A stretch of 64,000 bases of DNA, taken from the NCBI GenBank assembly GCA_047495785.1, contig JBLDXI010000007.1:2604001-2668000 (forward strand). Reading direction: 5' to 3'. Position 1 is the first letter of the stretch; the number at the start of each line of letters is the position of its first letter. Positions 15,259 to 62,874 of the stretch are shown piece by piece. Source of the DNA: Lepidodermella squamata. Lineage: Eukaryota; Animalia; Gastrotricha. Under the pieces are notes generated by a model. It was not told where the DNA came from. It saw nothing but the letters and a program-made list of their open reading frames with translations, and searched no databases. The position numbers and the translations under genes were made by a program.

Positions 15259-18103
15259 TTAGCCGTCGCTAGATGTCGGTCGGTTGAGTTGTCGCTGGCT
15301 GCTGAACCACGTGCTGACGCGTACGAAAGTTAGGCCTAGAGAGTTCGCGAGTTCCTGGCGCTCAGCGACTGATGGGACAGGACTCTTTGCCAACTGAGCT
15401 TGCAAGGCTTCAAGTTGGTCTTTCGTCAGTTCGGTAACGCGACGCCGCTGGGTTTTGTCCTTCAGTCGACGAGAAATGAACCAGGAAGTAATCTAAAAAT
15501 TTACCAAATGCATTTATCAACTTCAAAAATGAATATAAAATTATTGTAGAATTTAATTGAATGTAAAAGGAAAATTTTGAACTATTTTCGCGCCACGAAC
15601 GATATAGAAATTTCATATATGCTGTCGTTCGTATTGGTACTACAAGATACTACTACGGTGTACTTCAATTGTATGTGGTATCGACAGATCCGTGGCATTG
15701 CCATGGGTAGCAACATCACGCCCGTCACTTCGAACTGCTGGATGTACTATTTGGAACGTGACATAAAACGTGCCAACGATGGCGCGGAGATGGGTCGCTA
15801 CTTAGATGACATCAACTGCATCGACCACTCCATTGACACGGTCTAGGGGTCGCTTCAGTAACTGAACAATGTTCACCCGAATGTCAAGGTTACCGGCGAA
15901 GTTGTTGACCTCAGTACGGCCCCTTTAAACTACCTGGACATCAGTGTCCGGCGACTGGGGAACGCCTGTCAGCTTCGGTTTTCACCAAACCCACTGACAA
16001 CACGGCTGTCCTCCATGTCCTGTCTGAGCATCCTCGGCACGTCATCAACGGGATCTGTCACAGCCAGACCCTCCGCAGCCATTATGGCGCCTTTGTCCGG
16101 ACCACTCTGCGGTTCGCCTCCAAGACACTTCGACATGGCTATACATGGCGCCAGCTGATGACCGGCCTACGCCACACTCTGACATCTACCACTGGCAAGG
16201 ACTGGCCGTTTTACTCCAGGCGACCTGCCTGGCAGGCTCAACTACCACTCAAGCCACGCTTGGCACTCACCTATACCAGTGCGGCAGCTCCCCTCTACCG
16301 TAAACTTGAGCGTTTTGCTGCTAATATACTGTGGCTAATATATAATCTCACTGAAGAGGACTACAAATACTTCACCCCTGATCCTAAGCTTCTCGCAGAA
16401 GACGATGACTGAAAAATATTTCAGCAGCTCTCATAGCCGATTTCTTCCAAACCAAGCAAATCCCAAGCATACCAGAAGAAAAAAGAGCTTGCAACCTTGA
16501 CCGAACAGCCATTTACTGCGCGGCCTTCGGCCAACCCAGAGAAACCAAACTGATTGAAGGTCAGGTCATCCGCGTACAAAACGCAATTCTAAAGAAATAC
16601 AATGAAAATTTCCAGCTGTACATTAACGACTTCGCTTCGATTTCGTCAGTGACAACATCATTCCTGATGTCAAAACACTGGTCAACGTTCCCATCGCCCA
16701 TCGCACGAAAATACCACAAATTCAAGGCGATATTCAACTGTTCCATCGTGCACTTTGGATTGAACAATATTCCCATTCTTGCGACGATTGGAACAACGGT
16801 GTTTGGGGTTCAAAGTTCAAAGCCTTACATGTGATTGTATCAATGTCGGCGATCCTCAGCCTGCATCGTTCAAATCTCTAGACAGCGCCAGTCTCTGCGT
16901 CAAACTGCCGATGGTTAAAACTCTCCTAGGCTCGAGAATCATTTATCAGCTTACACCGAAAAACTAGGGATGCTTCATTCCCCATTGCAGTGAAACAAAC
17001 TCCGATATACGCTCTTAATTGGCACTCGACAGTTTCACAGGAAAGGAAAGTCAGAAGGAGTGTTTGTCAACATTTTTGAATCCAAATTATAAGAAAAATG
17101 TAATCTTAAGAATTCAAATTGATTTGTGATTTGACAACACTTTGAAAACAGATCAGACCTTAGCAACGTCAAGGCCAATTCGGTTTGCCAACTCTTGTCT
17201 AGCTTGCATGGTCGGATACTTGTCTCTCCCGTATGCTTCAGCCAAAGCTGCCAACTCGGCCTTCGAATAGACAACCTGTTCCGAACCATCAGCAGGCGAA
17301 GTTGGGCCTGTGGTTCCGTGGCTTGTCGCCATACTCAGCGATTCTTCAACCATCGAGCGCACTATGTTCATACTGTTTTCCTGGCGAGGTGGTGAGCTTC
17401 GGCTTTTGCAGAACCATTCTTTAATCTATGGAATAGGAAAGCATAGGCAGAAAACCTTCTCGCAAGAGCTAAGCGAACCTGATCGATTGGGAGACCAAGT
17501 TTTCGCGACATTTCTCGAAACTCAGCCTCTGACGGATTGGGGTTCAGTTTGAAAACCTATGGGAAACCTCATCACGACAAGTCCAAAAGATTCAAGTCCC
17601 TCACATCTTTCAGAACAAGTAGTTGATCTCCGGTAGGTTCGACGAACTCCCGTTTTATCGGGGTCGAAGTTCCAGCCTATAAAAATAATTAAAAATTGAG
17701 CTTCTCCATCAAAGGTTCATCAAAATACCGGAGCTGGGATTTCAGCTTGTTTAGGCGGGGCCATGGGTATGTCAGTCAATGGTGGCGGTGGATTAACAGG
17801 CTGGCGCCAGTAACCAGGCTGGTACTGTACAGGAGCTGGTTGCGGCCATCGAGGTATTTGAGGGGGCAAAGAAGCCATCATAGCGTTAGGATCGAACCAA
17901 GCTTGGTTATACCCGCCAGCCCAGCCGCCCCAAGCGTCAGGACCAGCGGGATAGTAGCCAGGCTGCGGCAGCGCGACGTTCGGGTCGGGCGGCAACGGAG
18001 GTATAAAGTAACCCGGCCCTGGTTGTGGGTTCATCTGCCAGGGTGCGAAGTAGCCCGGTTGAGGCAACGAGGTTGTGGGAGATCCCATCGGATGATTCAT
18101 CAT
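15259..18103 (-). CDS. Triple-homeodomain protein with a Pro/Gln/Tyr/Trp-rich N-terminus (5 coding exons)
   Basis: HD1 DQLLVLKD|VFKLNPNP..LGLPIDQ|IKEWF. HD2 YSKAELAALAEAYGRDKYP..LDVAK|ITSWFISRR. HD3 LTKDQLEALQAQL..VSTWFSSQR in terminal exon 15492-15259. Confidence 0.8.
15640..16420 (+). mobile_element. Decayed Penelope-like element reverse transcriptase fragment, antisense within the last intron of the triple-homeodomain gene
   Basis: YRQIRGIAMGS, RYLDD, LNNVHPNVKVT, YLDI and TKPT...LHVLSEHP...SQTLR motifs; contains stops and a frameshift. Confidence 0.8.
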
Positions 18104-18235
18104 TGATAAACACAATCTGTTTTCAATCAATCTGAAAATTACAGAGCGGTTGCCTTCAAATTATTGAAAATTAATTTTATTAAATTATAAATGAAAGACG
18201 CGGTATAGGAATCTGTTCAAATCAGCTTTCATCAT

Positions 18236-19111
18236 TCAGCCATTAGTTCTTCGTGGGCCTCCATCTTCCGGCAAGCAGTAATTTGTCTCAGAACATTCAA
18301 TCAGCCAAGATCTCGGAACACTTTTCACGCCTTCAGGAATCTGAAAGCCCTCAGGAATTGGTCCTTCAATCACGATATGAGTTATATCATTCGAAAGACT
18401 TTCCTTGAACTTTCCGCCGAATTTCTTGATCGAATTTCTAATACTCTTCTGCGTCGCCTCGTCATATCCGATAGCCCCAAATGAGAGCCCGTAAAAAGCC
18501 GGCAGCAGATGTTTCACGGTTAATTTTCTGAAATCAAACCCGTTTTCACAGTTTTCGACGCCCTTCCAAACTTTATCAACCCACTGCGATGAAAGGATAG
18601 GCTTCAAAGTACGGCGAAATTCGGCCGACTTCGGACTAGTTAGATCGTCCGAAATTAGGACATTAGCAGCGATGTGAGATTCAGTCACCTGCCCACCAAG
18701 CCAATGAATTTTTGTCGACATCCTTCCCTGCTCGTCGCGAGAGGCGGAAAGTGATAGGGCAACCTTAATTCCAGCCAAAATTTGGCCGAAATAAGCCTGG
18801 TTCCCACGCGGTAGTGAAATCAACCGATTTTCCAGGTAATTGATCAAGCAAGAGGGGCCATATATCCTGTAGCCGTTCGCCACGAGGTGATCGAAAGCTT
18901 TTCCTTCAAATTTGCTGACGACGCAGAAATTTTCGCACGGCAACGTGGCCGATTTTCCGAGGCTTGGAACCGCACTTTCGATAATTCGTTCGATTCTTAA
19001 TCGATCAGCCGCTCGGGATGAAATCAGTTTTTCAGCTCGAGACATCGCTCCATTAATCGCGACTTTATTTTCTTCATCGACCGGAGAGATGAATAAAACT
19101 TTGATCGGCAT
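18236..19111 (-). CDS. Stand-alone TopBP1/Rad4-type BRCT0-1-2 protein, intronless, 291 aa
   Basis: FEGKAFDHL..GYRIYGPSCL (BRCT0 signature); IHWLGG...PILSSQWV.KVW; IKKFGGKF...ITHIVI...VPRSWLIEC.ETNYCLPE. Confidence 0.8.
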   Translation of the reverse strand: MPIKVLFISPVDEENKVAINGAMSRAEKLISSRAADRLRIERIIESAVPSLGKSATLPCENFCVVSKFEGKAFDHLVANGYRIYGPSCLINYLENRLISLPRGNQAYFGQILAGIKVALSLSASRDEQGRMSTKIHWLGGQVTESHIAANVLISDDLTSPKSAEFRRTLKPILSSQWVDKVWKGVENCENGFDFRKLTVKHLLPAFYGLSFGAIGYDEATQKSIRNSIKKFGGKFKESLSNDITHIVIEGPIPEGFQIPEGVKSVPRSWLIECSETNYCLPEDGGPRRTNG

Positions 19112-19191: not shown

Positions 19192-20630
19192 TCATTTAGA
19201 CGTGGAAGAAACAGGTTTTGTGGACGTGACAGCTCCAGGTAACTGCATCAGCTTATCCCGATAGCGTCTCGAAGCGAACCAGTTGTCAATCTAAAACGGA
19301 AATTCAATTAGAAATTTCTCATTTTTTCTCTGAAAGATGTTGGAAAAGAAAAATTAGCGGATAAAATCGCTTTGAAGTTTTGAAGAGCCCGGCAATTTTA
19401 AACCGTTTTCTGAGAAATATTCAGATAGAATCCATAATTATTGAAGTCCCGTGACTTGGTACTACATACAATACAGCTCGAGTTGAATACGAAGTCAAGG
19501 AAATCTTACGCGGTACAACGGAACTGAAAAATCAGCAGCCAATCTCTTTCTTTTTTCCGGCTTCGGCGTCTTGCACTTCTCGAATTCCTATAGGGTAAAG
19601 ATTTCGAATAATCAAATTCTGAGTCAGGAACCTTCATCAACAAATACCGAGTTGAGAGTTTCCAATTCTTCAACGGTGAAGTAGAACGGGGTTCGCAGGG
19701 CTGGGTTGGCAGCAACCGCCGCGGCAGCCGCTTTTTTCGCCTCGGCTTCTCTTGATGATGACGATCCTTTCGGTGACGAATCCACAACTGGTTCGGCCAG
19801 TTCAGGCAAAGGGGGCGATGACGGATTTTCAGCAGGAGTGGGCGGAAAAGTCATGCCCACCAGTGTAGGAAACGGATTGCTTACCTGGAAAATTATGAAA
19901 ATTCAATTTTTAGGAATTTAGAAATTTCTTCGTATTTTTTTATTTTCAAGCCAATTACTTGAAAAATTATAAGAATTTCAAACAAAATAAAATATTCCAA
20001 TTTTTATACATTTCAGTTCTCAAAATTTTTTATAAATTTTTCGAAAAAATTAAATATCAATAAATGAGAACAATTCTGAAGACATTCTGAATATCAAAAT
20101 TCAATTTTTTCAATTTAATTTTTCAATTGAAATTTAATTTTTTTATTTTAAATTTGCAAATAACTGCAAATAAAAAAATGGGAAAATAATGTTACTTTTG
20201 AAGAAACCGTGCTGTGAACTGAAGTAGCCGACTCGCCGCCCATCGACCCATTGAAACTGCCCGACATGACCGAATGAGGAGTGCTGCTGTAGGTCGGCGG
20301 GGTTGGTGGGTAGTTCACGCCACTAGGCAACTGGCTTGAAATCGACTGCTGCGGTTGCTGAGCCGAAATTCCATAAGCGTTGCTAGGTTGGGCATACTGC
20401 CAATTTTGCTGCTGCTGCTGTTGAGGCGGCGGGTTGATTTGAGTGGGTGGAACTGGCGCAGCGCTACTTCGCATCGGGCAGTAGAAACAGTTGCATTGAT
20501 GGGACATGGCCTCGCGGTACGGCTCGGGCTGCGCGGGGTAGAATCGGCTGCTATTAGCTGGGGCCGAGCTGCTGCTGTAAGGCGAATCAGGCGTTGGGTA
20601 ATATGAAGAATTACTGAAATTATGATTCAT
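19192..20630 (-). CDS. Divergent single-homeodomain protein with a Ser/Pro/Gln-rich N-terminus (4 exons)
   Basis: Spliced HD reads FTVEELETLNS|EFEKCKTPKPEKRKRLAADFSVPLYR|IDNWFASRRYRDK, with GT-AG junctions in phase. Confidence 0.8.
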
Positions 20631-25974: not shown

Positions 25975-26166
25975 TGGGAAGACGTGAAACTAAACGAACT
26001 ATATTATGAGAAAACCTCGAGGCAGGATTCTCGAATTTCAGAAAGCGAAATTGAACAATTACAAAAAATTTCAACTAATTAGGAAAATTTTTATGAGACT
26101 TGAAACCTCAATATCTCACAACTTTCGATTCCTAAAAAAATGTAGTAGGATTCCAGCAAAACTTAC

Positions 26167-27573
26167 ATGACTCAGGGGTACATTGAATTTTCGAGCAAGC
26201 TTCCTCTTAACCAGAGTGCTGGGATTTTTGCAATGCTGTAGCATCATATCGAGCGTAGCATTCTCGCCGTGGGTCAACGGCCGAAACTTAGGCTCTACCC
26301 TCCGCCGTGAAAACCAGCTATCGACCTTCAAAATGTCACAAAAGTCTAATAAAAAAATCTGCTCATGCGACTAACAAATTTACCGTGATAACGTTTAGTC
26401 CAAGCTTTTGAGCGATTCGTTCTCTCTCGAAGGCATCCACGTGTTCAGAAGCCGAGTAAGCCTGTGAAAAGCACAGCTGAAACTGATTGAGAACTTGCTT
26501 CTATTGCTTGCTCACCTCTTCTAAGTAGACGAGATCGGCAGCAGTGAAATTCGGGCGACGCGTTCTCGGCTGAATGCCGGCGCTACGCCTGGTTTTACCG
26601 AACCAATACTTCATCGAATTCAAACTCATCCCCAGCTGAACCGATAGTTCTCTCATACGCTCCCGGGGTGGATACGTGTTCCGAGCAAATTCCTAAGAAA
26701 AATGAAAAAAAAAATCGAAAAAGATCGAAGTCTCAGAAGTTGCGCAAATTGTTTATAATAACTTTTTGTTGGAAATTCAATTGGGTTTTATTAAATTAAA
26801 CCTATCGAGAGAATATTTCTTATTTTATCAGCGATTTAACCGAAGAAATAAAAAAAGTTACCGGGGAAAACCCGAAAAACCCCGATGGTAACTGGTTTGG
26901 TAATTTTCTGTATTTTACCCGTTTAGACCGAATTACTCCGGACTTTTTTAATCCCATGAACAAGTAAATTTCTTTGGTTACTATTCTCGTGATTTTTTTG
27001 CTGGCCATTAGATGTGACTTCGTATCTCATTTCAGAGTTTCTGAACCTTTTTCCGTATATTTGTTTGCTTGCGTTACTTACGGGTAACGCAGTGGAAACA
27101 GATAGCGAAAAACTAAAGCAGCCCAATCTGAATTCATCGGGAAAATATTTCCTGGCTGTAAGCCGTCTCGGAAGGGAATTTTTGGAATCAATTTCCAATT
27201 ACACCAAAAAATTAAATAAAAATTGAACGATTTTTTCGAATCCTGATTGCAATTTTAAATTTTGAATCTATCGGCGAGGCTCCGATCGCCGGAAAATTAC
27301 CTTGTTCAAAATGTTCAGTTGGCTCTCAGACAGGACAGATTTACTTTTAACGGCGGCAGACCGATCACTCTGTCGGCTATCACTGGCTTCTACGTCGCAA
27401 ACTTCAGATTTAACCACCAAATTTTTCATTTCGGAAGTTGCATGGAGTTTTTCTGGCGCTTCTAGTTGAGCTACTCGGGCTTCAATCGCGGTCAATTTAG
27501 AGTCGATCAGCAATTCAAGGCCATTTAGAAATAGCCGATAAGCCTCCTCTATCGGTGATGGGACACTCATCAT
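26167..27573 (-). CDS. Coiled-coil plus triple-homeodomain family member 1 (terminal exon not securely located; candidate near 24195)
   Basis: IDSKLTAIEARVAQLE; LSESQLNILNK|EFARNTYP..MKYWFGKTRR; FTAADLVYLEE|AYS..|VDSWFSRRR; LTHGE..CKNPS..LARKFNVPLSH|. Confidence 0.8.
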
Positions 27574-27700: not shown

Positions 27701-28430
27701 TCAGCTTCCATCTTTCATGATTCGCAAAAAATCTGAAAAATAATCAAAATAAATTATAAGAATAAGAAAAATGGCTGAAAACAACGAATTTACCGCGAAA
27801 ATCGATCATTCCAATGCCGTTAAAACCAGTATGGCCGGTCATCTCGCAAATCTCGTCATCGGAGCACTGCTCACCGAGACTTGCCATGAGCTCCCGAAGC
27901 TCGGCCCGGCATATCAGCCCGTCGTTATTTCTGTCAAGCATTCGAAAAACCTCTTCCCAGTCTTCGTCTGCAACGGGTTCTCTTTCCTTTTTCTGCATAG
28001 CTTTGACGAATTCATCGAATTCTATCGCTCCACTGCCGTTCAGGTCGATAACTTTGATTTTCTTCCGCAGCTTTTCCTCGGTCAAATTGTCGGGGGTGAT
28101 TGCGCGGAGGACAATGCGAAGCTCCTCGGCGGTAATCTTACCATCGCCGTCTAAAATACAAATTAAAAAATAAAATCGAAAATTAAATTTAGCTAAGAAA
28201 ATTAAAAGTCAATTCGGAAATTAGAAAAAAATAATAACAATTTCCAAAATGTTAGATTTAAAATTTACCCTTGTCAAAAAATGCGAATGTTTTCCGATAC
28301 TCTGGAATAAAATTTGGAGAAATTAATTGCTAAAACAGAATAAGAACAACGAGAATATCCAACCTTCTAGAGTTTCTTCATCAACTTCGAACCGATAATC
28401 TCTGGAATCGGCCTGTAATAAAGCTCCCAT
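27701..28430 (-). CDS. Calmodulin-like EF-hand protein, copy 1 (4 exons)
   Basis: EF loops DKDGDGKITAEE, DLNGSGAIEFDE and DRNNDGLICRAE; fourth loop degenerate (GFNGIGMIDFRD); N-terminus MGALLQ. Confidence 0.9.
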
Positions 28431-28832: not shown

Positions 28833-31800
28833 TCAGTGAGACGATTGCCCGGATTTCTTGACTTTTTGCCGATCGTTGATCAACTTCATCGCCTGTTTCG
28901 GGAGTAAACAATAAGTACATAAGTAACCCAATTTTTCATATTCTCAAATTTTCAATTTTTCTAAATCTCAAAGCCAAAATTGTCCTCTATTCATTTTTTT
29001 ACGAATTTTGTTCACGCTTCAAGATTTCACGAAATTTCAAAATTTGGCTTATTTTTTACTTCTTCCTAATGTGTTCCCACTCGCTCTGATTAGAAGGGCA
29101 GAACACCAAATTTCAGGGATGTTTCAAGTCCGAAATTTGAATGGCTCTGTGTGTTGCGCCCGCGGAATTCTTAAAATCGCCGCGGTGGTGCGCTGCGGAA
29201 TAATGCGCGAGTGCGCGCGATTGTTTATCTTTCTGCTTAATAGTGTGCAAAGGTGCGGTGTTAAGACTTTTGACGCGGAAACCATTATTCGCGCCGCGGA
29301 AAAATTAAAAAATAGACGCGGAAAGTAGCGATGAATCCGCGGAATTAAATCCATTAATCAGAATAACTTGGCGGCTGGTTTTTTTTGCAAAAATCATCCA
29401 CTGACCACAGAACCACTTCGTCACGTTAGCTAAACGCGGCTGATAGCAAACCGCTAGCACCTAGCGACTGGTATTAAAGCTCTATAATGGGCTAACTTTT
29501 TCGCGCAAGGTCGGCCAGATATGCCGTAAAAGGGATGTTCGCTATCGGTGCGCATGAACTGGGTGTTCGGCGGCTGCGTACCTATGGGACTCGAAATGAG
29601 TTAATACCGGACTGCGCACGAGGGTGGCTATAGTAACACCGAAACAACCGCCCATTGCTAGCTCCTAGCACCTAATCGGGGTGGTTCGATAACCACTGAG
29701 ACTGAGCCGAGCCATTTTACGACCCGTGTTACTCAGCTCTTTCCAAACGCTGGACGCTATTCCCCCGCCGACCCATTACAACATGTAGCAGTCAATTTCT
29801 TGAAAAACCGCGTTCGAATGAACCCTCTCCGTGCGCAGTTGTCACATTTTTATTGCCCTTATTGCAGGTTTGCAAGGCGCTCGCTCTCAAAAGCGGTGTT
29901 AATCCGCTAATCCCTAATCCGCGTCTCAAGAGTTCCGCCCCTCTTCGCCGCCCTAGCCCTCTGTATTGCGCTGTTGACGTGACTCGCTACCTCAGGACAC
30001 CGGGCTGTGCAAACAGCTTTGGTCAATTTTGCCGATTGTTGTCGATTGCGTTGAAGTTTTTCGAAAGTTTTTCGAAAGTTTTTCGAAAGTTTTCACACGG
30101 CGCGCAACTTGGCGCAACTTGCAAAAACTTGTCAATATCATCCCACTGGCTGAATTCGCTCATTTTTACGGTACCAAGAGCAACGGATATCGCTAGCGGC
30201 GCTTTGGTGGTGAAGATGTTTTACCGCCTTCTTTACCTGCGTATTACCTGACTCAGCGGCAACGGGTCAAGTCGACCCGCCGGTCACCAGTCACCTGTTG
30301 GGTCAGGTCACCGGTCTGGTACTAGTCGTGAGACCATGAGACGTACCAGGACGCCGAGGCTTGATAAAAGGGGCAAAAAACATCAGCTCGTGCCTCAAAT
30401 CAATGCGACGAGCTCATGAATAATCCGTTTCGCTTTACACAGATTTTATTATAGGAGATTCGAAGCCTCGGCGTCCTGGCACGTCTCATGTTCGCGGCCA
30501 GTCAGCCGCTGCCGATTGACCGGTTTTCAACCGAAATATGTCACAAAACTCAGAAATTTTATAAATCGCGTCTTTTGTTTACTATTAGCGTCTTTTGACC
30601 GCGCGCACTCACCGATTTCAGCGGGAAGCGATTAAATAAGCGCGGCGGATTAACATTTTGACCGCGCCTTCACAAATTCGCGGTGCGCGCACAAATTCCG
30701 CGTCATTTTACACATTTCAGCGTCGTGTTTACTTTGGGCGAATTTGAATTATAACCAATTAGTTAACCTTACCTTCAAGAGACGGGCAATCACAATTAAA
30801 AGCCAGGGTTTAAAAAAACTCACAAGACTCCAAGGCACGCCAAGCTTTCGAGCAAGCCTTCTCTGTTGGTCGAGACTTGGCGTTGGGCAAGACTTCAAAA
30901 AAGTGTCAACCACATCTAGGTCGTTCTTCGTCACCTCACGCCATCTACTTTTCTCCCTTTTCTCGACTTTTCTACGCCCCGCGAACCAGTTATCAATCTG
31001 AAACGAAGCTAAAAGAAATCGGGGCATGGAAATGATTTAAGCAAACTAACCGCTACAATGTCCTTTCCAAGTTTAAGAGCAACTTTCACTCTGTCGAAGG
31101 CATCAACGTGAGCTTTCGAAGCATAAACCTGTACGAGGTATTATGTTTAAAAAAAAATCAATGATTTCCACAGGTTGAAACTCACATCTTCCAGGTAAGC
31201 CATATCTTCGGAAGAGAAATCCGCGTTACGCCGTTTATTTGAAAGTCCATATGCGCGGCGAGTTTTGCCGAACCAGTTTTTCACCGCCTTGTTAGTAACG
31301 CCTAAACTGGCGGCCAATTGCCTTTGTCGCTCAATCGTCGGGCAACTGTGGTCGTTGTATTCCTACAAAATAGTACATGACTCTCTTATTTTGATCTTCT
31401 CATCAAGAGTTGGGAATCAAGTTTTATCTAATGGAATCCAAAATAAAACCGAAATTGGAACTGATATTAAGGACAAATTTACAAATTTTCCGAATTTTCC
31501 CAATGTTAAAACCCATTAAAGCCCAATAGCAGCTTTTTTCGACCATCATACTATGTTAAAATCCTGTAGAGTGACTACAACCCCCAAGGTGTTTAAAAGG
31601 CGTATCTCCGCGCGTATTATCGAATAAATCCCGATGGTAACTGGTTTGGCATGTGAAAAATTGATAGCGAGACGCCCTTTCCTAATAGTCCTTACTTTTA
31701 ACAAGACGTTGACCTGGCTGTCCGAAAGTCTAGTCCGAAAGTAAAAAGGCCGGCCGGCAGTTTCGGGAAGGTCAGAATCCGAATTCGCATCATCCGTTTC

Positions 31801-31950
31801 GCTGGCAGTCGACTGTTCAGGAAGTCGATTGGGGCTGGCATTCATTTGTTCCAAGCACTTTAAACGTGCTTCCAATGGAGCAAATTTATCGTCGATAAGT
31901 CGCTGAAGCCGGCCATAGAACAAAGAAATTGCTTGCTCAAAGGAAGCCAT
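28833..31950 (-). CDS. Coiled-coil plus triple-homeodomain family member 2 (5 exons)
   Basis: IDDKFAPLEARLKCLE; RTRLSDSQVNVLLK|EYND..VKNWFGKTRR; IDNWFAGRR; last exon AMKLINDRQK at 28892-28833 after a repeat-filled intron of about 1.9 kb. Confidence 0.8.
30335..30490. repeat. Small fold-back element with inverted ends of about 28 bp
   Basis: CATGAGACGTACCAGGACGCCGAGGCTT ... AAGCCTCGGCGTCCTGGCACGTCTCATG. Confidence 0.75.
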
Positions 31951-35015: not shown

Positions 35016-35841
35016 TGAATTTCTTTCTAATTTTTAAAAATTCGACTGCTCAACGAGTGCTAAACGCAAAAATTGATGATTGCACAATGGGTGCGTAAAC
35101 CCTGCACAAAGTGCTCAACGTTCGCTACTCGATTGCTTAATGAATGCTCAATGAGTGGTAAATGACTGCTCAATGACTGCACAATCGCCTAAAGGTTGCA
35201 CAATGACTGCACAACGAAATGCTTAACATTGCAAAATTATATTGAGCACGGGAAATAATTCTGCTCAACGAATGCTCAACGGATAAATAATTGAAAAATT
35301 CTCGCTATTTTTTTGTTAGAAAGCTATTAAAAAGGGTAACAAAAATTCATCAAAAAAGAGGCTGTGAATCTTCTAGACGTCAGCGAGAAAATTTCGTAAT
35401 GTTTTAATAAAAATATAGCGCAATGCACTGATTTAGAAATTAACAAAGGTCAATAAATTGAGTCATCGTGGCCAGAGGTTCTCAATTCGAAAAAAACCGA
35501 AAATTCAAGCAATAACTGCTCGGGCGCCAAGATAACGCAACTCATTTTTAAAACGCGCGTCACTAGAAATTAAAAAATTGAAATTACCGCCAAATACGTT
35601 GATGAGTGCGGTCCGGTAATCCGGATTGTCAATACCAGCTTCGTCCACAAGTCCCGTGGCAATGGTGGTGTAATCAACCATCTCGCTAATGCTGGCAGTT
35701 TCTAGAGGGGCGGAAGACTCCGAATTCAAATTCACTTCGCTGCCATTTAACTGTTCAGAAATTCTGTTAGTGTAGCCCAATTGCTCCAAGCGACTTAAAC
35801 GGGCTTCCAGTGGAGCAAGTTTATCCTCGATAAATCGTTGA

Positions 35842-36622
35842 CCCAGTCAAAAGCCTGTGGGCCCATGGTGGGCCTATGGTAGGCCTTGTCCGTTGGGCCT
35901 AAGATTGGCCCATGTTAGGCCCGGCTGGGCCCTTGTTGGGCCCGAGTATGTCCGTTTTCCTGGGCCCAAGCTTGGATTTTGGGCCTCGTCTGGGCCTATT
36001 TTGGGCCCATTATTGGCATCCTAATTAAATAACACATCGGGTATTCTTTTATCTTTTTTAATAGATCAAATATTGCATTAAAAGGTTCACCGCATATGCT
36101 TCATTACATATGCAAGGGATGGAATAGAAAACCTGCTACCTTGGTCACATAGGTCTAAACTCACCGCCCGATAAAATAGAGATACAATCATAGAAGAGAG
36201 GGGATACAGGGAATCATGGTGAGAATAAGAGATAAGGGACTATACAGGAGGCCCTTGTGATGTATTCAGTACATCAACGTTTGGCGGATCTTGAAAATTC
36301 AGCTGGAATTTGACGTTTGACCCCCCTCGCGAGAGCTCAGCTTGTATTCCAGCTAACTAATTTGCATATGCACACAATTCATCAGCCTAATTAAGCTTTC
36401 GATTGGGCCTATTTTGGGCCCGATCAAGAATCGGCATTGAGACATCGGCACTCGGGCCTACCATGGGCCTAACAAACTTTGGGCCAATAATGGGCCTAAC
36501 AAATTTTGGGCCTATAACGGGCCTAGCAACTAGCGTGGGCCTACCATGGGCCCATTGACTTCCTGCCTTGGGCCTATAGTGGGCCCCAAGGCCTACCATG
36601 GGCCCAAGGACTTTTGACTGGG
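35842..36622. mobile_element. CCC-terminated MITE with GGGCC-rich subterminal repeats
   Basis: TIR CCCAGTCAAAAG/CTTTTGACTGGG; comparison with the paralogous reading frame implies a 1-bp target duplication. Confidence 0.85.
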
Positions 36623-36828
36623 GAAGCCCATCATAGATAAAAGAAATTGCTTGCTCCAATGTAGCCATACCTCAGATTGCCTAGGCTTTAAAAAATCATA
36701 AATTCTTTATAAACATTAGACTGGGTTCATTTTTGAAAATTAATCTCAAAAGCGAAAGAACCAAGCATATCGTCGACCAAAATAAAATTCAAATTTGTCA
36801 AGGCGAAAATGGACGATCGAGAAGCCGA

Positions 36829-38157: not shown

Positions 38158-38289
38158 CGACACTCTGGTTCCAACTATAGGTAGAAATTGTCTAAATTGA
38201 TTCAGAACTAGGCATTTATTGTCCAGATGAATGTTTCAATTATTGACGATTGAAAATAAGAGATACTGGCGATTCTGAATAATGAAATT

Positions 38290-38341
38290 GGCTACTCATA
38301 AAAAGCCGATAAGGTTCCTCACTTGGCGGTGGGACATTCAT
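38290..38341 (-). pseudogene. 5' remnant of a family-member-1-type gene
   Basis: Reads MNVPPPSEEPYRLF against MMSVPSPIEEAYRLF at 27573, in the same position after the calmodulin-like gene. Confidence 0.65.
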
Positions 38342-38465: not shown

Positions 38466-39113
38466 TCAGCTTCCATCCTTCATTATTCGCAAAAACTCTG
38501 AAAAATGTAAAAAAAATAGGAAAAAATTCGAGAAATCGAATGAATTTACCTCGAAAATCGATCATTCCAACGACGTTAAAACCAGCATGGCTGGTCATCT
38601 CGCAAATCTCGTCATCGGAGCACTGCTCACCGAGACTTGCCATGAGCTCCCGAAGCTCGGCCCGGCATATCAGCCCGTCGTTATTCCTGTCAAGCATTCG
38701 AAACACCTCTTCCCAGTCTTCATCCGCCACGGGTTCTTTTTCCTTCTTCTGCATAGCTTTGACGAATTCATCGAACTCAATCGCTCCACTGCCGTTCAGG
38801 TCGATAACTTTGATTTTCTTCCGCAGCTTTTCTTCGGTCAAATTGTCGGGGGTGATTGCGCGGAGGACCATGCGAAGCTCCTCGGCAGTTATTTTACCAT
38901 CTCCGTCTAGTTTAAAAATTTAAATTTAAATTCAAAATTTAAATTAAATTTACCTTGGTCGAAAAACTCGAATGTTTTCCGATACTCTGGAAGAAAAATG
39001 AAGAAAAATTCAATTGCAACGATAGAACAATTGCAAGAAAATAGCCAACCTTCCAGCGTTTCTTCGTCAACTTCGAAACGATCTCTAGAATCGGCCTGCA
39101 ATAAAGCTCCCAT
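38466..39113 (-). CDS. Calmodulin-like EF-hand protein, copy 2
   Basis: Near-identical protein and exon structure to 27701-28430. Confidence 0.9.
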
Positions 39114-39740: not shown

Positions 39741-39861
39741 AATACATACCTAAGACAAAGATTGGTCAGCCTTGAAAACAATTTTTAAAATTTTTTCTAA
39801 ATTTAGAAATAATTCATATCGAAAGCGAAAAGACATAAAATCGTGCATCCAATGAAAAATC

Positions 39862-41526
39862 TCAAAATATTGATCGAAAAGCCGATTTATCGACGTTTAT
39901 AGCTTTCTTACGATCGCTGATGATCTTCGCAATCTGAAAATGAGAAAAATAAGAAGATGGGCCACGTCTAAAACTAGGCATAATTACAAGTCTGAGAGGC
40001 ACGCTCAATTTTCGGGCGAGTTTCTTCATCAGCAGCTGGCTAGGTTCTTTGCAGCGCTGCAGTAAATCATCGACCAAGCCGATTTCTTCGCGAGTCAACG
40101 GCCGAAAAACAGGCTCAATTCTCCTGCGACTGAACCAGTTGTCTATCTGAACGTAAATTTGTACACGAGATTTCGATTCGGGATAACTCTGTTTACCTGA
40201 CGTACGCGTCTGCCGAGTTTTCGAGCAATTTGTTCCCTGTCAAAAGCATCGACGTGATCCCTGGATGCATACATCTGGGGAAAAATACCAGCAAATAGCC
40301 GAAATCATTACTGCAAGCGTTAAGCTTACGTCTTCGAGGTAGACTAGGTCGGTTGCGCTGAAGGGAGTTATCCTCCATCGCGGGGTGACCCCACTGGCGC
40401 GGCGGCTGCTCGAAAACCAGGATTTCAACGAATTAAGGGATACGCCAAATTCATTAGCCAGCTCTTTACGGCGCTCCATCGAAGGAAAGTTGCTCACTTC
40501 AAATTCCTGGGAAAATAATGAAAAATCAATAGTAATACAGTGCGTGGCAAAAAGAAATCACGGAAAATTGTTCAGAAACTCTAAATTGAGAAGCCAAGTC
40601 ACATGGCCATAAAAAAATGTAGAAAAATTAAAAAAATCACGATAATAGTAATCAAGTACATGTATCTTGTTATTAAGGTTGAAAAAGTCTGGAGAAATTT
40701 GGTCAAACTGGGTGAACTACCGGGCCATGAAAGAACCAGTTGCCATTGAGGTTTTCCGGGTTTTCCCTGTAATTCTTTCATTTCTTCGGTTAAATCGCAG
40801 CTAAAAGATGCACCAGAAAAAAATGCACCCTAATCAATTCCGGCCGGTTTGATTGAATTTCAATAGCGTCGTCATTTTTTATTTTCAACTCGAAAAAATT
40901 GACACATAGGTCAATGAGACTATGGCGGACATGGTGATATTTTTTTTAGATCGATAATCGTTTTTAGAAACAGATGTGAAATTTCAAGTTGAAAATAAAT
41001 CGAAATTTCAATCTCAGGTTGACTATTCTCAAATTGCTAGTATGGGATGATAATTAAAATTAGGAGAGGCTTGGATTTCAAGTTATATTTTTAAAAAATC
41101 TTTGGCGATAATGATTAGGAAGCGGGATGTGTTCCCGATATAAATCAATTGAATTGAAAAGTTTTGAATCTCAAAACTTAAGACTTGATTCATTTGATTC
41201 ATTTAATGGTGATTTTCATCGAAAAATCCTACCTTTTTCAATATATCTATCTGGCTGGCAGTCAGCTTAGCTGGGCCTGCACGCCCTCCAGCCGATGATA
41301 CGCTCTGCTGGCTAACGCTGACCGTGCCGCTGTTAGCATCGACAGGCGCCTCAGTTTTAATCGCCAACTCTGGCTCTGGCGTAGATTCGGATGGAACGCT
41401 GCTACTCATTGGAAGCTCGAGCTGCTCTAATCGAGCTTTCAAAGGCGCCAATTTCGCGTCGAACATCGCTTCTAAATGTCCGAGTAACAGCGAGCAAGCT
41501 TGCGAAAGCAATGCCTCGCTACCCAT
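39862..41526 (-). CDS. Coiled-coil plus triple-homeodomain family member 4 (5 exons)
   Basis: FDAKLAPLKARLEQLE; LTASQIDILKK|EFEVSNFP..LKSWFSSSRR; IDNWFSRRR; IAKIISDRKK. Confidence 0.85.
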
Positions 41527-53075: not shown

Positions 53076-54346
53076 ATAAGGGATAAAACATTACAACTAA
53101 GGTCCCGTACTATTATTTTTTTGGTTTTTAGAAATTTATTTCAGCCCATTTTTCGGAGAAATAGGGAGACAAGAATTTAAAGCACAAAGAACCTCGTGTA
53201 AGAACAATTTCACAATTATTGTCCACTTCGAAAAATGATGCGTTGTTACAGTTGGAGAGTTGATACTTTCATGTAATAAAATAATTAGCTTGAATGGTAA
53301 TCGTATTTCTAATCGGTTCTAAAAGGTGAAAGCCGAAACTGTGAAATTTGAACTAAATTGCGAAATGTGATGACGTTTACAGGAGAATTATATTGAACTC
53401 GGCGAAATTCATGAAACCGGACAATTTGAATTCAATTCGAGGCCGATTTGAAGAACCTGGCCAGCTTCCGCAATTTTCAGAGCTTTTATTAGGATACGAA
53501 CGAAATCTCTTGGCTAATTTCATAATATAGCTGGAATTCATGATGGAAGCTGAATTTAATTCTGCACCGTAAAAAACTTCAAACCGGTTTTAAATTAACG
53601 ATTAACGATTATTTATTAAGGGTACTCCTGTCAGCGGAACCAAATATGCTGTATCGGAATAAAATGTTGGACTTTTCTAGTGGCCTGAAATCGCTTTTGG
53701 AATATTTATTGCAGGTCAAGATTGGCTACAAAAATTCTAGAAAATCATCAGTGAATTCGGCGCAATATTCTCTATAATACGGAGTGTTCAAATCAGAATT
53801 CATGCTTAGCCCAAAATTAGTAGAAATATTAATAAAATGACTCGTCTCGCAACCGCGTGCCATCTATGTCACTTGTCTATGAACTGTTCTGTTCGACAGG
53901 CGGGATATTATTTCATTGTATTGTTCTTTTATGTTGATGACTAATGGACAAATAAATTTGAATTTAGAATTTAGACTCTTGGCACATTTCGAATTTGGTT
54001 CCGAGAGAGAAAGAGAGATACCGATTTATTGGTGGTCTTATTAATTCATTTTCATTGTTTACAATGAAGAGCTATTTTCATCACTTTTTACCTTAACCAC
54101 CTAACATTCTCTCAGAGATGACAAACTGACTATAGAAATTATTATCAATTATTTGAAGCACCGGTTTTCGATCTGATTCTCCAACAAGTCTCAGGCGACA
54201 TTGAACACCGTTTTAAAAATCAGGTTTTTATTGTTGACAGTATAACACGTGCGCGAGTAGTGCGCACACCGAAGTGCGCGCCGCAATGTATATCAATAAC
54301 CAGCCCTTCCATATTGTTCAATTGCTGAACTAAAATTGCACTGTAA

Positions 54347-55007
54347 ATGGTAGGTCTTTTCCAAGCTAACGTGCAATTTTCTGCATTTTCTTCTCCATTT
54401 TGTCGCAGTATTATAAGAAATTGATTCTCGCCCGATGGTTGGCGGAAACGTCGGGAAAAAATTGCGATAAAGAGAACAAAGAATCAGATGCAGCAGATTC
54501 GGCGGCCGATCATGGAAATCTCAACCATCCAACATTGCCACTCAAGTCTATTCTGAAGGAAACGAAGAAAGTCACGACGAACGTTCTGAAATCTGCAGAT
54601 AATGAACCTGTGAAGAAGAAAGCCCGGCAGGCTATTAGGCCCAAAGTGAAAGCTGATCGCGAACGGCCATCATCGCTGCTTAAAGTCAAGGTTATGTTGG
54701 GTATAAGTTCCGCTTATTTTTTTAATTTTTTAATTATTCAGTATCCTGCAAATTTGAGCCGGGCGTGCGAAACTCTTCGCGAGGTAACTTGGCAATTTTT
54801 CCTGTACTTTAGGAAATTATTTCTTTCGTTTTTTAGATATTTTCGTTACATCCTCGACCAAGCCCTGAGTTTTTGGCAAGTCTCTCCGACAACATGAAAA
54901 TCGGCGTCGGCTATTTGAAGCTTTGGTTCCACGAACAGCGAAAATTATCGAATATCCTCCGAAAAAAATTAGTGACAGCACCGAACAATTCTAACCCGAA
55001 TAATTGA
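54347..55007 (+). CDS. Divergent single-homeodomain protein with a basic N-terminus (4 exons, the first being the ATG only)
   Basis: LSRACETLRE|IFSLHPRPSPEFLASLSDNMKIGVGYLKLWFHEQRK; phase-0 GT-AG introns. Confidence 0.7.
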
Positions 55008-55128
55008 TTGAAAATCGTAACTATTTAATTAAATTTATATTTTAGTGATTTTATCGATTTTATCGATTGGCAATTTCCATATTTGAGCGAAGAGTCTTGT
55101 TGTGATTGGATTGGTTTTGTGACGATTA

Positions 55129-56787
55129 ATGGAGCATTCGAAGCAAACAGCTCGTAAGTCGACCGGTGGGAAGCAGCCGCGTAAACAGCTCATTTCCAAG
55201 TCGCCGCGAAAGCCGCCTATCGTTAAGAAGCGCCGCGAAGAAGCGCCGAAACGCACGATCCGGTTCCGCCCTGGCACCGTGGCGCTGCGCGAAATTCGCC
55301 GCTATCAAAAATCGACTGAGCTGCTGATCCGCAAGATGCCGTTTCAGCGCCTCGTGCGACAGGTCCTTCAAGGTGAAATTTTGATTTTTTTAATTATTTA
55401 TGGTCGGCTGATGAGGCGGTTTGCACTGCGTTATGAACCTAATTTAGTTTAATTTCAGGGCAGTATTTGAAATTAATTTTTTCGATTTTATTTCGGAAAA
55501 TTAGGACATCCATCATGGGTCCAAATATTTGCACCGCTAAAAGTTAGGATCCATCAGAAAATTCAAGAGTCCTGGCACGACATTTTTCATATTCTTTGCA
55601 ATTTCGGCGTTTTCGCTTTTTGATGGAAACTGATGCCATCCCTGAGCCTGGGATTTTTTATTTTAGCTACCTGGCGTCCCAAGCTACGCAGACAAAATAT
55701 CGACGTTGGGTTTTAAGATGGCTGATATCGGGAAAATCACTGATCAGTAAAATCGATAGTTGGAATCGATATCGGCTCTATAAGATGAAGTATAATTCGT
55801 AAACTGACCGCTCATAGCGCAAAGTACGCGTGATATGACGGTCTATCGGTTGGGCATGATAACAAAAAATTGAGATTCCTGTGAAGACTAGAAACTCGGA
55901 AACCCGTATTTAGTGCCCGAGTCTCAAATTTAGTGCTAGAACCCTAAATTTAGGGTGCGCATTTAGCAAACGTATAAATATTTCGACTCAATAAGCGCTA
56001 ATTTCTTGACCTATCTTAATTCAATTCCATTCCCAAATTGAAGAAGCTTAATCTTAATCACGATTTTATTCAATCATAAAAGGTCAATCCAAGTTCAATG
56101 AATAATTTAGATTCCTTTTAGTTTTACGTAATCGAATTTCAAAACCCGTCGCAAATCCAACTTGGAGAGGTACCAACAAATGTTTGTTCAACAAATGTTT
56201 CCGCTGTTCAAAAGTTCTGCTGAATTTTAGGGCTAGGAAATTCGATTTTTCGATAATTAATCTGAACGTCTAAATAATTAGGACTCTATTTGTAGGCAAG
56301 TAAATTGTTGGAATTTTGTTCCGCTAAAAGCCGGGTCCTTATCCTAATTAATTAGGCTTCAAAAATGTCTGAGGGCCATTTTTGAACCTATTGGATATTC
56401 GAAAATCGGTTCCGGTTGAAGCGAGACCCGTCCCAATTTTTTTCTACCACAATTTCAGTTCCTTGAAAAGAACCACCCTGTGTTAATTGTTTGCGCGATG
56501 GATACTTTGGATATGGGAACTTAACAATTCAAGTAGACTTCGGCCAGAACTAGAAAAAAAGAGAAGCTATTGAAATTAATGATTTTGTTTTACTTTCAGA
56601 ATTCAAGATCAACTTCCGCATGCAAGCTGCTGCGGTCGAAGCGTTGCAAGAAGCCTCCGAAGCCTACCTCACCGGCCTGTTCGAAGACACGAACCTGTGC
56701 GCAATTCACGGAAAACGCGTGACGATCATGCCGAAAGACATTCAACTGGCTCGTCGCATCCGGGGCGAAACTTACCGCCAACGCTAA
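55129..56787 (+). CDS. Divergent histone H3 variant (exons 55129-55372 and 56600-56787)
   Basis: [34 protein letters not shown] and [30 protein letters not shown]; 1227-bp phase-1 intron; downstream AATAAA. Confidence 0.95.
55633..55857. mobile_element. 225-bp interspersed repeat in the H3 intron (copy of 39516-39740)
   Basis: Direct sequence similarity. Confidence 0.75.
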
Positions 56788-56961: not shown

Positions 56962-58119
56962 ATGAATTGTTTCTACTACTTTCCGGTTTATGTACCTCAA
57001 CTGATTGCGGCACCTGTCAATAATAACCAACAGGTGAGGAACCAATCCATATCTATACCAGCTGCGATTCCTGAACCAAAAGAATTTTCAGTCACAATTC
57101 CCGCGTCTCTCGAGCCTACAAAATTGACAATTAGGCTGGTTAACGATCAAGAATCGAAGGTTCCAGTCTCGAATTATCGATCGAATTCGATTCAGATCAT
57201 TGAAATCGAAGACGAAGATGAAAGACCTGCGAAATCCACCTCGAATTGCGTCGAAATTGCGACCATTATAAGTTCGAATGAAACCTCAAGTTCGACAAAG
57301 GAAAAATCGGCAATCGAAGTCAAATCGGAAGAAATCAGCCACGCTGTGAAAAAATCGATGCTAGAGGAAGGCTTCAAATCAGATCCGTTGATGAATGATC
57401 CGGCGAAAGCGGACCAATTAGCGGAAGATCTGGGGATTTCGAGGAATAAATTGACGGCTTGGTTCGAAAGGAAGCGGGAAAAATACCGGACAAGCCTGAA
57501 CCCTACTCAAGTTCAGCGGTTAACGAAAATCTATGAACAGAAGTCGAATCCAAGCCTTCGTTTCATTCGGAAAATCGCGATGAGGCTTGAAGTCGAAAGC
57601 TTTGTTGTTAGTTTCGAATTAAAATTGAAATTTGAAATTTTACTATAAATTTGTAATTTAAATGAAAATTTGAAATTTGAATTAAAATCTGAAATTAAAA
57701 TTGAAATTAATTTGAATCATCTAAATTTTTAAAATTTTAAAATTCATTTGATTATTTTTTTGAAACAGATAGAAATTTGGTTCAACGAGAAGCGGAATGA
57801 TAAGAACGCAAGATACCTGACTAGGCGGGAAAGTGCTGAATTGTTTGATTTCTATAAGAAATGCCGCGAGCCTACAATAACTCAGATGAGCGATTTGGCT
57901 TTGCGTATGAATTTACCGGCTTTCAAAGTATTCCGCTGGTTTCGATTTAGGAAACAAGGCGACTCCAAGGTCAGATTTATTTAGCCATTTTTGGTTCGAG
58001 TAACGAAATTGTTTTATTTTTTTAAGACTGACGATGAGCAGAACTTGCGAGGCAGCTTGGTTGATGTCAAATCTGAACCTATTGAGAGTCTTTCTTCTAA
58101 TCTGAGTCAGCGTTCATAG
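56962..58119 (+). CDS. Triple-homeodomain protein (3 exons)
   Basis: LAEDLGISRNKLTAWFERKR; LNPTQVQRL..YEQKSNP..|IEIWFNEKR; LTRRE..CREPT..VFRWFRFRK. Confidence 0.8.
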
Positions 58120-59667: not shown

Positions 59668-61399
59668 TCAATCTAACACGATCACACTGGATGACGTAGA
59701 AGTGAAACTCATCGACAGCGTCATTTCCGATATTGAGCTACTTCTGGTATTAGCTGGACACGTCGTCGGCTCGTAGGCTGTAACCGAAGATGACGAAGAT
59801 GAAGCGTCGGAATCTTGCCAAGTCGCGACCACGGCTTGGTAAGCCCTGTCGACAGCCGTCCTCGCGTCTCGGATCATACACGACCTCTCACAGTCGTCAC
59901 ATCGCCATGGAAACTTGTCTTTGATCCATGGGTTTATGCATCCCCTTGAAAGTACATTGAATATGTTAAAAAAAATAGAAAATTAATCACAGTCATTCAA
60001 ATTTAAATTGTAAATTCAAATGATAAATTTAAATGAATTTATTTATAACGCTCTGCGACATTTGAGGCAACGACAACTGAGCAAAATATCTGTAACTTGC
60101 CTGTGAATTGCGCCAGCAGCTCCGCAAACCGAGCACGGTAAAACATCCCATTTTCCGTTAATACTGGGCTTGGAATATTCTCGGCCTTTGCGGCACTTGC
60201 ACTCGCTCGCATGGCAGGACATAAAGCCGTTGTCTTGCTCGCTAAATGACCCGTCCATCTCCCAGTTGGCATCTTTCACCGGCAGCTCAATGCCGAGCCA
60301 TTTCAGTTCATCGGCGAAGCCTTCTTTACGACAATTCGGGCAACTAAAGTGATACGCACCGGCTGAATGGGCCCAACGCTGTTAAAAAGAAACATTAAAT
60401 AAATTAATCGGAAATGGATAATAAATTCAAATAATTTAATTTAAATAATTAATTTATTTTACTTGAAAATATTAATTAATTGAGTCGTTTTATTAATGTT
60501 GAGGCCCGAGTCTGATTCGGCCCGTACACGCTTCGGCTGGCCCGTGCGCAGGCGGATAACATTGATTTGCCGCTCCGCGCTTGGGCCGGTCTGAAACGTG
60601 CCCATATCGGCATGGTGTTGGCCCGAGCACCGCGAAAAACTCAGCGCCGCACTCGGGCCGCCGGGCTCGGACCTCTGGAATCTGGCCGCCGGGCTTGGGT
60701 AATCCTACAACTAACACCCTTCCCGATAATTGTATCAAGTGCCGACCCAAGCCCGGCGGCCCGACTACATAATAATTATTTGAAAAATATTAATTAATCA
60801 AAGATCAACATGTAGATAATTACTTGGAGACATGTCCGATGGAACCACCGCCGGCAGAGGGGGCAATATATTTGAGCGAATCCAACTCTTTCGACCACTT
60901 GATCCATGCAAATCATGCACTCTGATGACTTCTCTGCCGCCGAACCGTTGTCCAACTCTGCTTGCTTTCGGTGGTGAATAGGGCAGAATGACTTGAAGTC
61001 ATTGAACACGAACATCACATTATTTTCGACACCACAAGGCACATGGTACCGCTGTAGAAATTTTCGAATATTTAATCGAATTTTGAGCAGATTCCGAAAA
61101 ATTACCTGATCGCAATTTGGTTCGTAACATTTAGCACCGGCATTTTTCTCGCCGCAGAAAACGCACGAGATACGAGCGGAACGTCTCGCCTCGCGTTTAA
61201 TGGCCTCGCTTTTAAAATAGAAGAGGCAAGTCGTGCCGCCCTTGCCGTCCGAATCGCATTCGTCCTGTTGTAGCAGATCGCTGCCGAAATACAAGCAGTT
61301 GCGATGAGATTTCACGCCGTCTGGCCGCGAGAATACGTCGCCAATCAGAGGATTGTCGACGTTCGGGCCTTTAGAACACAACATGCAAATAAGGGCCAT
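59668..61399 (-). CDS. PHF7/G2E3-family protein (extended PHD, RING and PHD; no HECT domain), 4 exons
   Basis: CxxC...HRNCLYFGS.L.Q; IKREARR; C.FC...GAKC; YHVPC; SFCPIH; WFHRTCLQ; SAGAYHFSCPNC; GI.LP.KDANWE; C.A..C.C..GR. Confidence 0.9.
60496..60770. mobile_element. GC-rich GGCCCG-repeat insertion in an AT-rich intron, probable MITE
   Basis: Sharp composition boundaries, ATGT...ACAT ends and repeated GGCCCG/CGGGCC. Confidence 0.5.
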
Positions 61400-61523
61400 A
61401 TCGCGGCCCGGTTTTGCCTAACAGAAAATTGAGGATGCCAATGTGAAAAGAGACTCTAGATTCGTTATAACTTTATAAAAAATTGAAAATTCAGCTGTCA
61501 CAGAGCAACATTGTTGATATCTT

Positions 61524-62874
61524 TCAGCGTTTGACACGAGCGGTTGATCGCCTGCGGTTGTCGAACCAGTATCGAACCTAAATATAGAGAAAAGCAATTT
61601 GCGTGAACTTCTCGCAGACCGTCATAACAGCAAATGGCCAAAACAGCAAACGCGACAAAACAGCAAATTTTTTCAACTTGCGACATAACAGCAGAAACAT
61701 GATGCAGCTTTTGCATAATAAGTTTTTGCTATTTTGTCGCGAAATAATAAATTTGCTGTTATGTCGCACTCGCTGTTCTGCGAAGTTGCTGTTAGGTCGC
61801 CATACCCTCGCGCAATGGTGTTAAAGTTAGAGGGCTAATTTGGATTACCTAACCTATTATTATCTGAACCAGAATGAACTTCAGATCATTCTCAACGGCC
61901 GTCGATTGAATGGGATCCTGGCGCAGCACACAATTTCGCGCACAATCAGCGAATTCGAAGGAGAATCGCCTCAATTTAATTTTCGCACAACACCTGTCGC
62001 ATTATTCGAAATCAGTCTTAATGCGTGCGATTAACAATTTTTTTACATTGAAATTAACAATTAGCGCCCAGTGGGGATTCTTGGAGTCAGTTGCAAAAGC
62101 AAAGCAAACGCAAAGGCAGACGCAGGACCGCTTCTATGCAAGACCAAACTCATATTATTCTCTTTCGAACCCCAATCGGGACTAGTAATCCTAAAATTTC
62201 AATACCTGGGTAAGCTTCATGCCAAGTTTGCGAGATATGTCCTCCATTTCGGAACGAGACGGATATTTTTGTCGTTGATAGAACTGTAAGGTACAGCTTG
62301 CATTATAGTAATTCACACAGGAGCTCTCAAAGAGAAATTTACAAACCTTATGAAGTTCCTCCCCCTCCCAAGTGACCTTTCTCGGCCGACCTACGGCTCG
62401 CCGCGTTACCGGTACATCATCATTGAACTTGAGCTTGGAATTAAGAGTTCGGAGTTCAGAAAATAGTGAGCATTACGGTAAGAAATACCTTCGAATCTTC
62501 AGGTGACGAGTAATAGGGCATGACGTTCGTAAAATAGGCGTGATCGTGCACAATCGCGTTCTGAATCAGCATGAACATAGCCGTCTCAGGCTCGATAAAG
62601 TGACGAGGCGGCTCGACAACTGGGCTCAACAAATGCATCGCAGACATTTCCGAGCTTCGGACGATATATTGCCCAATCTGACAAGAAATATGATATTGCA
62701 GTTGATAGGAAAAAATGCTGATTTCGCAGGTACCATTCTTTTCGCGACCGTAAGACTTGCCATAATTGAATTCTTCCTCTTGCAGGTAGAACATCGTTTA
62801 CGAGCTTCAAGAGACATTTCTCGAAGTTTGCTAGTTTGAACAGCGACGTTTCGTACCTCAACGCCGCGTGACAT
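61524..62874 (-). CDS. Homeodomain protein with an AT-hook-like arm and DHAY and VAVQT motifs (5 exons; start uncertain)
   Basis: VGRPRKVTWGGEELHK|FYQRQKYPSRSEMEDISRKLGMKLTQ|VRYWFDNRRR. Confidence 0.75.
61619..61806. mobile_element. Palindromic MITE-like repeat (copy of 21365-21551), intronic
   Basis: Reverse-complement similarity to 21365-21551. Confidence 0.7.

Follow-up and report, generated by a model that had tools for sequence, protein, structure and literature searches.

In a stretch of 64,000 nucleotides (nt) of the genome of the gastrotrich Lepidodermella squamata (assembly GCA_047495785.1, contig JBLDXI010000007.1; called here the window, with positions counted from its first letter), a 48-kb homeobox gene cluster extends from 15 to 63 kb. 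It holds nine intact homeobox genes and one pseudogene, or about 21 homeodomain-like units, among which five other genes are interspersed: a TopBP1 BRCT0-2-like gene, a histone H3 variant, a PHF7 homologue and two calmodulin-like copies. The cluster would consist of lineage-specific, fast-evolving genes and would owe its make-up to tandem duplication, to the death of genes and to transposon insertions. We give about even chances to the proposal that a few units of two or three genes within it undergo the kind of processing known from spliced-leader operons. These short units, 1a>1b>1c, 2f>2g, 3b>3c (possibly together with 3a) and 4a>4b (run number followed by gene letter; Table 1), would be defined by five junctions that join intact genes. 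The layout of the junctions suggests that trans-splicing would supply the 5′ ends of the downstream mRNAs, as it does in the operons of nematodes, tunicates and flatworms.

Fourteen gene models were built from a reading of both strands of four gene runs, and frames and splice sites were checked by script. Database searches were done exon by exon; the spliced models were used locally for frame checks, BLAST and estimation of the ratio of non-synonymous to synonymous divergence (dN/dS). All 14 models are open. Their introns are GT-AG with a single GC-AG exception, the third of the PHF7 homologue (AG/GCAAGT, 60099-60100, minus strand), whose donor is the only non-GT one among the 41 modelled introns. 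The window is gene-dense, with short GT-AG introns and 37-51% G+C. A tblastn search of the homeobox proteins against the window found no further homeobox exon beyond the models, except the tail of the broken exon 1 of pseudogene 2d.

The initial annotation had described four co-oriented, operon-like runs, each pairing divergent homeobox genes with chromatin or cell-cycle partners. Its observation on gene layout is real and, with corrections, partly confirmed; its operon interpretation as a whole is partly supported. Sequence reading and script checks found runs 1, 3 and 4 as described, whereas run 2 is a tandem array and not a uniform run. The distances it gave from stop codon to ATG are all exact: 80 and 132 nt in run 1, 124, 127 and 160 nt in run 2, 121 and 174 nt in run 3 and 124 nt in run 4. 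The wording on partners suits three runs and not four, because the partner in run 2 is a calmodulin-like protein with four EF-hands. Co-orientation of two or three genes is in itself unremarkable.

Distances between neighbouring genes on the same strand are bimodal, with seven gaps of 80-174 nt and six of 308-2318 nt, whereas the divergent, promoter-bearing spacers of the window measure 689, 1454 and 1492 nt. Two of the seven tight junctions lead to a relic open reading frame (ORF) or a pseudogene. In six of the seven tight gaps the elements succeed one another in the same order: stop codon, AATAAA, ATTAAA or TATAAA, pyrimidine-rich AG, ATG (the exception is 1a>1b). None has space for a cis donor. 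Tight junctions are confined to the homeobox cluster; elsewhere, the two genes of a glutathione synthetase pair are 718 nt apart and Cys-loop channel genes 417 nt apart.

Acceptor-like AGs had been reported just before many ATGs, and inspection of the sequence found them at all seven positions (20631, 18132, 27583, 56944, 61418, 42977 and 45313; 61418 is weak). Sites were then scored with a matrix derived from the 41 cis acceptors of the cluster genes, with the 25th percentile of true sites as the minimum. Qualifying acceptors lie within 40 nt 5′ of 11 of 17 ATGs, compared with 12.5% of random non-coding positions (binomial P about 7e-7, a value that is optimistic because paralogues are not independent). 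An acceptor that follows a poly(A) signal without a cis donor is clear at three junctions. At 1b>1c, AATAAA (18181-18176) precedes an AG at 18133-18132; at 2f>2g, two ATTAAA copies precede an AG that ends at 27583, 9 nt 5′ of the ATG; and at 3b>3c, AATAAA (56916-56927) precedes an AG that ends at 56944. The arrangement is weaker at 1a>1b, where an acceptor-like AG (19128-19127) lies 15 nt 5′ of the ATG and a poly(A) signal is lacking, at 4a>4b, where the acceptor is weak and TATAAA is the only poly(A)-signal variant in the gap, and at 3a>3b, where the sole acceptor (55045) stands 83 nt 5′ of the H3-variant ATG. Among the remaining genes, the first of run 1 has an acceptor AG ending at 20631, directly 5′ of its ATG, and 2b has no acceptor within 150 nt 5′ of its ATG.

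This layout resembles that of C. elegans SL2-type operons, in which same-strand genes form small units of two or three, about 100 nt apart, and a donorless 3′ splice site, no more than tens of bases beyond a poly(A) signal, precedes the next ATG. Unlike those operons, the members here are lineage-specific regulators and not housekeeping genes, the internal H3 variant may have its own promoter, and no spliced-leader RNA gene lies in the window, where Rfam at gathering thresholds matched neither this nor any other known RNA; ARAGORN found no tRNA in the window. The spliced-leader operons of tunicates and flatworms (Ciona, Oikopleura, Schistosoma) likewise have spacers that are very short or nearly absent and share the position of the poly(A) signal, 12-23 nt 5′ of the acceptor at 3a>3b and 3b>3c; their gene content differs. 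Gastrotrichs have been placed as sister to flatworms (PMC11660948). The L. squamata genome paper (PMC11660948) does not mention operons or trans-splicing, and a literature search found no published report of spliced leaders or trans-splicing in gastrotrichs. If the downstream genes are trans-spliced from shared precursors, these would be operons of regulatory rather than housekeeping genes. Gastrotricha would then join the operon-bearing phyla, with consequences for the question of whether the flatworm-gastrotrich clade inherited operons and spliced leaders from its ancestor.

The same spacing could arise by extreme compaction alone, each gene having its own compact promoter, placed either within the gap or inside the 3′ end of the preceding gene. 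Acceptors close to the ATGs would then be unused, or would serve short 5′ untranslated regions (UTRs), cis-spliced or individually trans-spliced, without polycistrons. We consider this a serious possibility, although a less than probable one. Gaps of 80-132 nt have to take in the 3′ UTR and poly(A) site of one gene as well as the 5′ UTR of the next, with hardly any space left for a promoter, and all the divergent, promoter-bearing spacers are at least 689 nt long. The ordered signals at six of seven junctions and the strong enrichment of acceptors before ATGs with no donor in the gap also argue against it. On the other side, small promoters suffice here, because the duplicated calmodulin-like gene, whose copied segment reaches just 250 nt upstream of it, is still under strong purifying selection. 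In 3a and 4a the first exon is a cis-spliced mini exon. A 59-nt cis intron directly follows the 3a ATG, so that a separate start site is required just 5′ of 3a; the first coding exon of 4a is 18 nt long and is followed by a 179-nt intron (62856-62678).

RNA data speak to the same alternative. Contigs from two sequencing runs, X1 (RNA-like, in pieces of 55-127 nt) and X2 (DNA), were aligned to positions 54200-60199; such contigs show presence, cannot prove absence and are a poor measure of level. The H3 variant is expressed and spliced in X1. Its exons are covered (55126-55371 and 56598-56899), no depth is seen in its 1.2-kb intron outside a repeat, and the match of one 94-nt piece ends on the predicted acceptor, with 29 letters over, which fits an exon junction. 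The initial annotation had expected co-expression within runs, and for run 3 this is unsupported, the H3 variant being covered, 3a faintly and 3c not at all, with the caveat that contigs measure level poorly.

Several observations weigh against spliced-leader processing, and some of them favour compact promoters. For 3a there are only faint X1 pieces (depth about 4), and there are no X1 contigs on 3c (57000-58199), nor on the last exon of the PHF7 gene. Within the aligned region, no leader-like loose end occurs at 55045 or 56944 among the X1 loose ends listed, and no X1 contig of 55-127 nt was seen to bridge a spacer. The H3-variant pieces listed for X1 start at 55126, 3 nt 5′ of the ATG, rather than at the acceptor at 55045. 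The 3a>3b gap contains two tandem TATCGAT (DRE-like) motifs, some 70 nt 5′ of the same ATG; because of this doublet and of the RNA pieces beginning at 55126, a promoter of its own is probable for the H3 variant. No poly(A) signal can be recognised at junction 1a>1b, and the 4b acceptor ending at 61418 scores 2.6, below the 10th percentile of the 41 cis acceptors. Finally, only 79 nt separate the stop codons (46880 and 46960) of a glutathione synthetase gene and a Cys-loop channel gene that converge, so that their 3′ UTRs must be tiny or overlapping. The genome is compact everywhere, and short gaps alone are no proof of operons.

As candidate promoter elements we considered two motifs. GC-rich clusters of GTGCGCR lie 70-110 nt 5′ of the ATGs of 3a (70-100 nt) and 4a, a further one lies in the divergent spacer before run 2, and there is none before a downstream gene. 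The motif is mildly enriched (20 copies against 11.9 expected, a number that 4 of 100 shuffles reach) and many copies are in transposons, so that it is a weak hint of a promoter mark. GCGCGAG was rejected as such a mark, since it is not enriched (8 found, 6.8 expected).

Run 2 is a tandem-duplication, birth-and-death array with dead genes and transposon insertions and is not one operon; its long co-orientation results from tandem duplication. Among its tight gaps, that of 127 nt (2f>2g) does join two intact genes, whereas that of 124 nt leads to a relic ORF and that of 160 nt to pseudogene 2d. The remaining same-strand gaps are of 308, 748 and about 2300 nt (up to 2318) and contain transposon-like stretches, one of which lies 3′ of gene 2e (about 30760-29100). 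In 2d, the first exon is interrupted by an inverted-repeat element of about 0.8 kb (about 36640-35850) and no homeobox exons follow. A 1.06-kb segment, comprising the calmodulin-like gene, 250 nt upstream of it and the first 45 nt of 2g, has been copied to a place between 2a and 2c (28689-27529 against 39363-38300, 79-84% identity), and the co-duplicated start of 2g decayed into the 35-codon relic. We also considered whether this relic ORF (38341) could replace the modelled first coding exon of 2c; joined to the acceptor immediately 5′ of the 2c ATG (exon start 38174), it meets a wrong-frame stop, and the candidate was rejected.

The homeobox genes evolve fast and yet under constraint. The homeobox pair 2a/2c (dS 0.38) gives a dN/dS of 0.48, against 0.08 for the calmodulin-like pair 2b/2f (dS 0.31). 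In exon 1 of 3c, 17 of the 23 haplotype differences listed from run X2 fall at third codon positions, which places 3c under purifying selection. Over 54200-60199, X2 contains two sequence forms, one identical to the window (depth about 33) and a second diverged by 3-4%, with in-frame 3-nt indels (depth about 55-67), which suggests two haplotypes or strains.

Whether the association of homeobox genes with chromatin or cell-cycle partners has a functional meaning is a separate question. The strongest version, proposed initially, is that of four true operons co-expressing such partners with homeobox genes as a germline or early-embryo locus. TopBP1-like, H3-variant and PHF7 genes are indeed chromatin or genome-maintenance genes, PHF7 is germline-restricted in flies and mice, and the junctions have an operon-like layout. 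Against this stand the composition of run 2 (an array of duplicates that includes dead genes, has gaps of 308-2318 nt and pairs with a calmodulin-like gene), the uneven expression of run 3 and the fact that three chromatin-type neighbours among many genes make no statistical association; we judge this version very unlikely. A narrower form would have the tight junctions be real leader-resolved operons, in which promoter-less or truncated copies of TopBP1 BRCT0-2, H3-variant and PHF7 genes were captured between fast-evolving homeobox genes and gave small germline or early-embryo units; this too we hold to be improbable. In a genome as compact as this one, the pairing is more likely a by-product of insertions and duplications than a designed, co-regulated germline locus; the calmodulin-like gene has been shown to be copied into the array within the 1.06-kb segment.

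The three partners were characterized from their predicted proteins. Residues 63-282 of 1b align to chain residues 58-278 of 6hm5 (TopBP1 BRCT0-1-2; E 2.8e-14), and ECT2 and Rad4 are weaker matches than TopBP1. BRCT3-8 and the ATR-activating domain of full TopBP1 are absent from this single exon, which encodes 291 amino acids (aa) and ends at 18236, and the gene product is a stand-alone BRCT0-1-2 module and no TopBP1 orthologue. An exact look-up of 1b in public assemblies found nothing on record, and a word search limited to proteins of 0.55-1.75 times its length yielded no relative at E 0.001 or better. In the PHF7 homologue, exons 1 and 2 match PHF7 residues 10-169 (8jwj, E 1e-9) and exon 3 matches residues 170-259 (E 1.3e-13), and there are Pfam matches to zf-HC5HC2H and RING/PHD. 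Collinearity over the extended PHD, RING and PHD regions marks its predicted product as a true PHF7 homologue. In the H3 variant the histone fold is conserved, and in its rewritten tail (55129-55372) K4, R8-K9-S10, K14, K18, K23 and K27 are kept, prolines follow K27, and an acidic or basic insert replaces the K36-K37 region. Its 1.2-kb intron contains a high-copy repeat (55600-55970), also present at about 39580-39760 in opposite orientation, over which summed contig depth in the DNA run reaches about 17,600, as against 35-60 in the flanks; this is probably a high-copy element resembling miniature inverted-repeat transposable elements and carrying TATCGAT motifs.

The homeobox genes comprise single-homeodomain genes and one triple-homeodomain family. 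Exon by exon, matches to profile PF00046 exceed the Pfam threshold, with 1c, 2a and 3c reaching up to 51.8 bits. The triple-homeodomain genes of runs 1, 2 and 3 are collinear throughout their three units (E 3e-13 and 6e-13), with introns in common after helix 1 and before helix 3; because of this they form one family, with different N-termini. The canonical set of recognition-helix residues (W48, F49, N51, R53) is not kept as such. Asn51 is retained in two of the 17 units that have W48-F49, those of 4a (WFDNRR) and the first homeodomain of 2c, and the third unit of the run-2 proteins is without W48-F49, with R53 mostly kept. In tandem birth and death, fast evolution (dN/dS 0.48 here), the presence of more than one homeodomain in a protein and the disappearance of canonical DNA-contact residues, the cluster resembles the mammalian Rhox, Obox, Dux and ETCHbox clusters and the ZHX/Homez multi-homeodomain proteins. 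It differs from them in its independent origin, in the combination of a coiled-coil or low-complexity N-terminus with three homeodomain-like units, in the introns after helix 1 and before helix 3 and in the loss of Asn51 from 15 of 17 units. Operons aside, the cluster represents a large family of fast-evolving multi-homeodomain proteins without the canonical DNA-contact asparagine, parallel to the mammalian reproductive homeobox clusters.

Table 1. Genes, gene remnants and candidate promoter motifs of the homeobox cluster (positions in the window; HD, homeodomain)
Feature	Position	Strand	Description	Spacing or context
1a	19192..20630	-	single divergent HD protein, 282 aa, 4 exons; P/Q/S-rich N-terminus	
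1b	18236..19111	-	TopBP1 BRCT0-1-2-like, 291 aa, intronless	80 nt past 1a stop
1c	15259..18103	-	triple-HD protein, 341 aa, 5 exons	132 nt past 1b stop
2a	39862..41526	-	coiled-coil N-terminus and three HD-like units, 259 aa, 5 exons	
2b	38466..39113	-	calmodulin-like EF-hand, 161 aa, 4 exons	748 nt past 2a
Relic ORF	38234..38341	-	35 codons, copy of the start of 2g	where the 124-nt gap leads
2c	36829..38157	-	coiled-coil and triple-HD, 250 aa; 68% identity to 2a	308 nt past 2b
2d	35500..36668	-	pseudogene, coiled-coil exon only	where the 160-nt gap leads
2e	30824..31950	-	coiled-coil and triple-HD; last-exon acceptor lost	
2f	27701..28430	-	calmodulin-like, 162 aa; 94% identical to 2b	
2g	26108..27573	-	coiled-coil and triple-HD, 236 aa	127 nt past 2f stop
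3a	54347..55007	+	single divergent HD protein, 165 aa	
3b	55129..56787	+	histone H3 variant, 143 aa, 2 exons (55129-55372, 56600-56787)	121 nt past 3a
3c	56962..58119	+	triple-HD, 312 aa, 3 exons	174 nt past H3-variant stop
4a	61524..62874	-	single HD protein, 141 aa, 5 exons	
4b	59668..61399	-	PHF7 homologue, 358 aa, 4 exons	124 nt past 4a stop
TATCGAT doublet	55052..55067	+	two tandem DRE-like motifs	3a>3b gap
GTGCGCR cluster	54249..54281	+	GC-rich, candidate promoter element	before 3a
GTGCGCR cluster	62959-62987			before 4a
GTGCGCR cluster	41959-41979			divergent spacer before run 2

Other features were noted in and around the runs. The neighbouring genes include two tandem copies of eukaryotic glutathione synthetase (42981-46880), each with a good acceptor 2-3 nt 5′ of its ATG, and three Cys-loop ligand-gated channel genes that are tandem duplicates (46960-53075). 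The 1.66-kb intron of 1c (17158-15493) carries on the opposite strand a reverse-transcriptase-like remnant (RVT_1, E 5e-4, below the Pfam threshold). A repeat is common to 21245-21600 (plus strand, upstream of run 1) and 61500-61830 (minus strand, last intron of 4a), with similar ORF translations. An identical GC-rich 35-mer is present twice between a cathepsin L-like gene and the second run, at 24898-24932 and 25899-25933, 1001 nt apart; the two copies are possibly the ends of a repeat or of an element resembling those with long terminal repeats.

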